Part shown: positions 33,368-33,449 of the stretch, in pieces | Position numbering within the stretch: position 1 is the stretch's first letter | How the letters are laid out: every line of letters starts with the position of its first letter | Source: Hemiscyllium ocellatum | Lineage: Eukaryota | DNA: 64,000 bases | Direction: 5' to 3' | Assembly: GCF_020745735.1 (NCBI RefSeq) | Contig: NW_026867530.1 | Coordinates: 964,831 to 1,028,830, forward strand | Translations under genes and position numbers: made by a program | The notes under the pieces: generated by a model | Told to the model about the DNA's origin: nothing | The model's input: the letters and a program-made list of their open reading frames with translations, nothing else | Databases searched by the model: none

Positions 33368-33395
33368 AGTATTTGGCACAATGTGTCCCACAGTG
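33368..33395 (-). other. Recombination signal sequence, 12-bp spacer, 5' of the DJ segment
   Basis: Top strand AGTATTTGG + 12 nt (CACAATGTGTCC) + CACAGTG. Bottom strand heptamer CACTGTG; nonamer CCAAATACT (6/9 match to consensus). Confidence 0.8.
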
Positions 33396-33449
33396 ATATA
33401 GCTGGAGTTGGCGACTGGGGCCAAGGGACCATGGTGACTGTGACTTCAG
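33396..33449 (+). CDS. IGHJ: Pre-joined D-JH segment (IAGVGD-WGQGTMVTVTS)
   Basis: WGQG J motif, donor GTAAG at 33450. Only 20 nt lie between the heptamer and the Trp codon, with no 22/23-RSS in front of J. Confidence 0.88.

Follow-up and report, generated by a model that had tools for sequence, protein, structure and literature searches.

The single immunoglobulin cluster in a 64-kb stretch of the Hemiscyllium ocellatum genome (hereafter the window, meaning the whole stretch of DNA that was analyzed) raises the question of how a J segment that lacks an RSS of its own came to lie directly behind D-type sequence, and of how many joining steps still separate this gene from a complete V domain. 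The elements of the cluster lie on the plus strand in the order leader, V, J block, Cmu1–4, and TM1, within approximately 20 kb:

32546..32594, + strand: leader exon; ATG at 32546, donor GT at 32595
32723..33023, + strand: VH-derived part of the V exon, to TGTGCAAG (Pfam V-set, E 1e-16); germline V 3′ end AGAC trimmed
33024..33028, + strand: D1 remnant TGGGT, fused to V; homology to D1 and the D1 3′ flank from 33022
33029..33066, + strand: D1 3′ RSS, 23-type (CACAGTG, 22-bp spacer, nonamer ACAATAACC); the spacer is that of the D1 3′ RSS of the paralogous clusters L001 and L004, not of the V RSS
33067..33367, + strand: D1-D2 intersegment DNA, 301 bp, to be deleted by the last join; contains octamer ATTTGCAT at 33338
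33368..33395, + strand: D2 5′ RSS, 12-type (nonamer AGTATTTGG at 33368–33376, 12-bp spacer at 33377–33388, heptamer CACAGTG at 33389–33395)
33396..33449, + strand: fused D2-J coding block, 54 nt; D2 ATATAGCTGGAGT(TG), approximately 3–5 further bases, and J from (G)AC TGG GGC...TCA G
43618..43926, + strand: Cmu1 exon (Pfam C1-set, E 2e-15); AG/GT splice sites in correct phase
47020..47331, + strand: Cmu2 exon (Pfam C1-set, E 5e-18); splice sites present
49031..49339, + strand: Cmu3 exon (Pfam C1-set, E 4e-11); splice sites present
49795..50186, + strand: Cmu4 exon with secretory tail, stop codon, and AATAAA (Pfam C1-set, E 3e-22); internal G|GTAAA donor after 50124
52958..53085, + strand: TM1 exon (DSIDRTWIEDYEDDNSNIWTTASTFITLFFLSIFYSAAVTLVK), from a hydrophobicity scan and splice sites

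The 12-type RSS abuts ATATAGCTGGAGTTGGCGAC (33396–33415), which runs straight into TGGGGCCAAGGG...ACTTCAG|gt; the J part that follows ATATAGCTGGAGTTGGCGAC reads TGGGGCCAAGGGACCATGGTGACTGTGACTTCAG|gt (in codons, TGG GGC CAA GGG through ACT TCA G), with the donor GT at the end of the block at 33449, and translation of the block in the J frame gives IAGVGDWGQGTMVTVTS. A scan of positions 31.5–35 kb returned only two strong RSSs, each located exactly at a coding border: one at 33029, with a heptamer matching at seven of seven positions, a 22-bp spacer, and a nonamer matching at eight of nine; and one with its heptamer at 33389–33395 and a 12-bp spacer. The J-C intron, approximately 10 kb long, separates the D2-J block from Cmu1. 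The window contains no runs of N, and no other immunoglobulin or conventional gene was seen within it. Several reverse-transcriptase-like ORFs of up to 354 residues lie on either flank of the cluster, and a G/C-skewed tandem repeat is present at the window start (regions noted: 1–2400, 5700–8100, 53956–54801, and 62192–63253).

Much of this anatomy had been described by the first-pass annotation, and the description holds. It had placed a 12-RSS directly before a D and a WGQG-coding block; had noted a J without its own RSS and without its 5′ portion, approximately 12 nt of which are indeed missing relative to the J segments of L001 and L004; and had seen no second J, in agreement with the single J-like motif found on both strands of the whole 64 kb. 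Its V-to-J distance of about 370 bp is measured here as 367 bp, from the V coding end at 33028 to the DJ coding start at 33396, and its claim that all constant exons are intact is borne out by the Pfam C1-set matches and splice sites of Cmu1–4 and by the continuous reading frame described below.

The reference for an unjoined state is provided by two V-D1-D2-J IgM clusters of Chiloscyllium punctatum, L001 (BEZZ01001580) and L004 (BEZZ01002017), which were taken from the genomic loci of the best V-protein matches. The V domain of the window has its best protein-database match in this species (85% identity), as does Cmu4 (90%). In L004, a complete unjoined cluster, V ends in ...TGTGCAAGAGAC and is followed by a 23-type RSS and approximately 350 bp leading to D1; D1 (ATGCGACAGCGGGT) lies between a 12-RSS and CACAGTG-22-ACAATAACC, with approximately 300 bp to D2; D2 (ATATAACTGGGGTGA) lies between AGTATTTGA-12-CACAGTG and CACTGCA-12-ACAAAAACC, with approximately 350 bp to J; and J (ACTATCTTGATTACTGGGGCCAAGGG...) is preceded by AGTTATTGT-23-CACTGTG. 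The segments of L001 follow the same order, with ATACTACAGTGGGT as D1. The RSS pattern in these IgM clusters is therefore V-23 / 12-D1-23 / 12-D2-12 / 23-J.

Each of these two clusters also carries lesions of its own. L004, the closest unjoined relative of the window cluster, is pseudogene-like over its positions 9850–10500, with an 82-bp promoter deletion, a V frameshift, and CGCAGCG in place of the V heptamer CACAGTG. L001, otherwise unjoined, has lost the D2 3′ end, the D2 3′ RSS, and approximately 100 bp of the D2-J spacer at its positions 11297–11306, where ATATAGCTGA is joined straight to TGTGTTACTCTG, the latter of which lies approximately 200 bp past D2 in L004; having lost this RSS, the D2 of L001 would be unable to join J by the 12/23 rule.

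BLAST of window positions 32000–34500 against L001 and L004 resolves the region into three collinear blocks. The first, the V block (window 32149–33023; L001 9614–10479), is 88.6% identical to L001 and 91.3% to L004, and the homology stops at 33023. The second (window 33022–33404; L001 10919–11304; 91.5% to L001 and 88.4% to L004) comprises the D1 3′ end, the D1 3′ RSS, the D1-D2 spacer, the D2 5′ RSS, and the start of D2, with its 3′ limit at 33404 or 33408 depending on the paralogue. The third (window 33408–34500; L001 11511–12622; 91.2% to L001 and 93.3% to L004) comprises J and the intron, and begins at 33408 or 33414. The paralogue DNA skipped at the first gap consists of the V RSS, the V-D1 spacer, the D1 5′ RSS, and the 5′ part of D1; that skipped at the second gap consists of the D2 3′ end, the D2 3′ RSS, the D2-J spacer, the J RSS, and the J 5′ end. 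Neither missing spacer has left a trace in the 64 kb at E <= 0.01, which rules out reinsertion of the excised DNA elsewhere in the window.

The identity of the single spacer that remains determines how the segments on either side are to be named. Global alignment of window positions 33029–33395 gives an identity of 90.6% with the D1-D2 spacer of L001 and of 88.6% with that of L004; with the V-D1 spacers of the same two clusters it gives 47.8% and 50.3%, respectively. The V end reads TGTGCAAG|TGGGT, in which TGGGT is the 3′ end of D1, followed by D1's own RSS. Because the remaining spacer is the D1-D2 spacer and V carries the D1 TGGGT, the apparent V is a V-D1 fusion and the apparent DJ a fusion of D2 to J. 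The 12-RSS with its flanking sequence shows 88–91% identity to the D2 5′ flank of the paralogous C. punctatum clusters, a level that argues against a chance match, and the RSS itself is nearly identical to the D2 5′ RSS of both L001 and L004; the 12-RSS and the ATATAGCTGG core thus belong to D2, and the join is one of D2 to J. Judged by homology, then, the layout is VD1-[23-RSS...12-RSS]-D2J (VD-DJ), and not V-DDJ.

This outcome amends the first-pass annotation in part. The alignment to unjoined paralogous IgM clusters that it had proposed assigns the segments and yields both the D2-J and the V-D1 joins; D and J are pre-joined as claimed, and a single RAG step is left, with one 23/12 RSS pair surviving. 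Of the implied V-D(D)J arrangement, the D-J fusion stands; the D in question is D2 only, however, the D1 3′ end and its 23-RSS sit on V, and there are two joins and not one. The interval that had been taken for a V-J gap is, by homology, the D1-D2 spacer.

Feature by feature, the locus combines a minilocus organization on one strand (leader, V, J, Cmu1–4 with secretory tail, and TM) with fusion of V to D1, in which the D1 3′ RSS is kept and the V RSS and D1 5′ RSS are absent along with their spacer; with fusion of D2 to J, in which the D2 5′ 12-RSS is kept and the D2 3′ RSS and J RSS are likewise absent; and with a surviving RSS pair (33029–33066 and 33368–33395) that fits the 12/23 rule in deletional orientation. 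A canonical unjoined V-D1-D2-J cluster has four segments, six RSSs, and three spacers of approximately 200–450 bp, and can be rejected for the window, which has two RSSs and one spacer. On every feature that sequence can address, the locus is a member of the VD-DJ class, and is not an unjoined cluster, a V-DDJ gene, or a plain J.

The two joints differ in character. At the V-D1 joint, V has lost 4 nt (AGAC) and D1 approximately 7–9 nt (ATACTAC(AG)), no bases have been added, and the 2-nt AG at 33022–33023 is shared by both sides and may derive from V or from D1. At the D2-J joint, the block was compared with the L004 D2 (ATATAACTGGGGTGA; ...AGCTGGATTGT in the VDD-J cluster of locus L002) and with the J of L001 and L004 (ACTATCTTGA(C/T)TACTGGGG): the D2 side extends over ATATAGCTGGAGT, possibly to ...TTG, and J homology resumes at 33408–33414, where AC|TGGGG or GAC|TGGGG matches the J end. 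The boundaries among D2, N, and J are approximate, as the 3′ ends of the three paralogous D2 copies compared differ from one another, and the N-like bases are therefore not fixable at exactly GGCG. The trimming and the few N-like bases of the first-pass annotation are retained, and its exact GGCG is replaced by approximately 3–5 bases around TGGCG, which may represent N additions, sequence inherited from an ancestral D2 or J, or substitutions of a later date. None of the four breakpoints is more than approximately 12 nt from a heptamer border, and exactly one 12/23 RSS pair was lost with each deletion; together, these features are a signature of RAG cleavage with end processing.

The reading that we favor, with a probability of about 0.85, is that this is a germline VD-DJ IgM gene derived from an unjoined cluster by two RAG-type joins, with one step left. 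The ancestor would have been an ordinary V-D1-D2-J-Cmu cluster of the cartilaginous-fish IgM minilocus type, in which two RAG-type deletional joins, V to D1 and D2 to J, came to be fixed in the assembled genome, with RAG presumably having made both joins in the germ line. A germline origin of the joined form, as it stands in the assembly consensus, is highly probable in its own right. RAG activity in germ cells has been proposed as the cause of joined shark genes (PMC2193156); germline VD-J, VD-DJ, and VDJ forms are recognized in cartilaginous fish in a 2016 review (PMC5192425), and approximately half of the horned-shark IgH loci have been reported as joined (PMC3308330). Half-joined genes of this type had thus been described from sharks and rays before, and the window cluster is a further instance.

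Joined clusters are also present in other shark assemblies. Two divergently oriented IgM clusters in C. punctatum (L002, BEZZ01001741; 1470–3300 on the minus strand and 10653–12135 on the plus strand) are both germline VDD-J, with different junctions, and the one on the minus strand shows decay: its V has stop codons, its J heptamer is CAATGTG, and its J has TGT GGC in place of TGG GGC. In another locus of the same species (L005, BEZZ01138472; 920–988), the V coding end TGTGCAAGA directly abuts a D1-type 3′ RSS and the D1-D2 spacer with zero D1 bases left, which could be a V-D1 join with complete trimming of D1 or a deletion between two CACAGTG heptamers. In the whale shark (L003, Rhincodon typus NC_063338; 10001–10560), a full VDJ (...CARDWGGSLHYWGQETMVTVTA) has no spacer between its V and J homology and may be an IgM1gj-like gene of this species. 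Taken together, these joined loci suggest that germline joining is common in the lineage of the window cluster.

Other accounts of the locus must be weighed against this reading. A good 23-type RSS after V and a 12-RSS before the DJ block could also describe an unjoined V, bearing its own 23-RSS, that faces a germline D1-D2-J fusion, and spacer lengths alone would fit such a V-DDJ layout. The RSS after V and its 367 bp match the D1 3′ RSS and D1-D2 spacer (approximately 90%), however, and not the V RSS and V-D1 spacer (approximately 49%); V ends in D1 sequence, and the 12-RSS and its flank are those of D2 and not of D1. The V-DDJ layout is refuted by this homology, and we regard it as exceedingly improbable. 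The first-pass annotation had itself allowed that paralogues might reveal an ordinary unrearranged J with such a 5′ end and a 12-RSS. They contradict this: the J segments of the paralogues carry a 23-RSS and begin with ACTATCTTGA(C/T)TAC, and the RSS, the upstream flank, and the first approximately 11–13 coding bases in the window are D2's. As nothing favors an ordinary J beyond an RSS adjoining a WGQG-coding block, its probability is negligible.

The remaining alternatives concern not the layout but how it arose. Partially rearranged (2R, VD-DJ) intermediates are abundant in nurse-shark thymocytes and occur also in B cells (PMC2435157), and it is therefore conceivable that a somatic IgH molecule of this kind from a lymphocyte or thymocyte was caught in the assembly, in which case the structure would not be heritable. 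The N-like bases at the D2-J joint of the window would be in keeping with such an origin, such bases being scarce in germline-joined shark L-chain genes (PMC2193156). Somatic junctions, however, vary from cell to cell, and germline reads should prevail over them when a consensus is built; the 64 kb in which the cluster lies are contiguous, with collinearity to paralogues on either side of it; and the independent C. punctatum assembly also has joined clusters, some of them decayed by stop codons and mutated heptamers, which argues for heritable persistence. A somatic origin is accordingly unlikely. It is less likely again, and by a clear step, that two RAG-independent deletions (e.g., microhomology-mediated) removed the V-D1 and D2-J spacers. 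Such a process could leave a joint like that between V and D1, at which 2 nt of microhomology (AG) are present and no bases have been added, and the L001 deletion, only one breakpoint of which is adjacent to an RSS, indicates that events of this type are possible; but for two random deletions to place four of four breakpoints so close to heptamers, while removing one 12/23 pair each, would be very unlikely.

If the gene is, as we favor, a germline VD-DJ gene, a lymphocyte would complete its V domain by a single 12/23 deletional join removing 33029–33395. The two RSSs that would take part match the consensus as well as the paralogous RSSs do. One base (T) is left over at the VD end and two (AT) stand at the start of the DJ block; together they complete a codon, so that a blunt join (CASGYIAGVGDWGQG) is in frame and translates as ...YYCASG-Y-IAGVGD-WGQG. 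CDR3 diversity would then arise from one junction instead of three, with the J-proximal ...AGVGDWGQG hard-wired. A conceptual splice of leader, VD, DJ, and Cmu1–4 yields 576 residues with a single terminal stop and AG/GT borders at every intron, and the gene, as predicted from these features, is structurally intact. L001 and L005 are collinear with the window cluster in the promoter and TATA region, where L004 has its 82-bp deletion, and L001 and L002 are collinear with it along approximately 10 kb of the J-C intron; no perfect octamer is present upstream of the leader, though the region there is conserved in the paralogues.

A functional gene of restricted repertoire, as the first-pass annotation had suggested, is plausible, and the gene may still be used. 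dN/dS for the V exon against paralogues ranges from 0.44 to 0.91, values that are uninformative because CDRs are included. No protein more than 85% identical to the window V was present in the protein database, and no transcript or protein evidence was found for the window gene. Adult horned sharks gave no detectable expression of germline-joined H genes (PMC2193156). A fuller proposal, in which the locus works as a one-step H gene, contributes an IgM repertoire of limited breadth, perhaps during early life, and has the D2-J half of its CDR3 fixed, and in which the 3–5 bases of non-templated appearance at the inherited joint of D2 and J are the mark of a TdT-like activity in the germ cells, appears doubtful to us; germline-joined shark L-chain genes give little sign of such activity (PMC2193156).

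Among known systems, the closest are the germline partially joined IgH genes (VD-J, VD-DJ, and VDJ) of horned shark, skates, and ratfish, with which the window shares its cluster architecture and the precise loss of RSS pairs with trimmed coding ends in the genome; it differs in being a new locus, in an orectolobiform genome, with junctions unlike those of the joined C. punctatum clusters L002 and L005. The somatic 2R VD-DJ configuration of the nurse shark (Malecek et al. 2008, PMC2435157) is identical in topology, with V-D1 and D2-J joined and the D1-D2 spacer and 23/12 pair kept, but represents per-cell products, whereas the window is an assembled genome consensus and most likely inherited. 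Nurse shark IgM1gj and the whale-shark VDJ are likewise IgM-type clusters in which V(D)J joining took place in the germ line; IgM1gj, however, needs no RAG step and lacks Cmu2, whereas the window gene needs one join and has four Cmu exons. As in the one-step V-J loci of light chains, one deletional 12/23 join is all that the V domain still needs, and the DJ block resembles a mammalian DJH intermediate in having a 5′ 12-RSS; unlike in either of these, the upstream partner is a VD fusion with a D-derived 23-RSS, and the DJ is most probably heritable and not a developmental intermediate. Fusion of V to D in the germ line is shared with chicken pseudo-VH segments (PMC2193156), but these gene-conversion donors lack RSS, leader, and promoter, whereas the window VD has retained a leader, the promoter region, and an RSS fit for use.

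Germline-joined antibody genes of sharks are the main natural evidence for an ability of RAG to act in germ cells and to reshape antigen-receptor loci. The window locus is a particularly clean case: each breakpoint can be placed by comparison with close unjoined paralogues, the two joins are precise with respect to RSSs, and the gene, still intact, is one step short of completion. It is a further documented VD-DJ gene, from an orectolobiform shark, and leaves the known picture unchanged. Its fixed AGVGDWGQG end (...AGVGDWGQGTMVTVTS) provides an easy transcript signature for the use of half-joined genes.

Several minor features lie close to the D2-J block. The sole ATG upstream of it (33381) is out of frame with J and meets a TAG within seven codons, so that a D-mu-type protein is not predicted and this candidate product was rejected. 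Approximately 50 bp upstream of D2J, at window positions 33321–33345 in the D1-D2 spacer, GAGGAAGTGA (Ets/PU.1-like) accompanies the octamer ATTTGCAT, which is the only perfect octamer within 31.5–34 kb; the C. punctatum paralogues read ATCTGCAT at that site, and the octamer is thus a one-base novelty of the window cluster. A T/G-rich tandem array (45-bp period, approximately 6 copies, 75% matches) occupies window positions 33968–34250, 0.5 kb downstream of J; the same intron region is repetitive in L001 (approximately 12180–12384) and L004 (approximately 12259–12472), and the array is therefore a conserved feature of the J-C intron.
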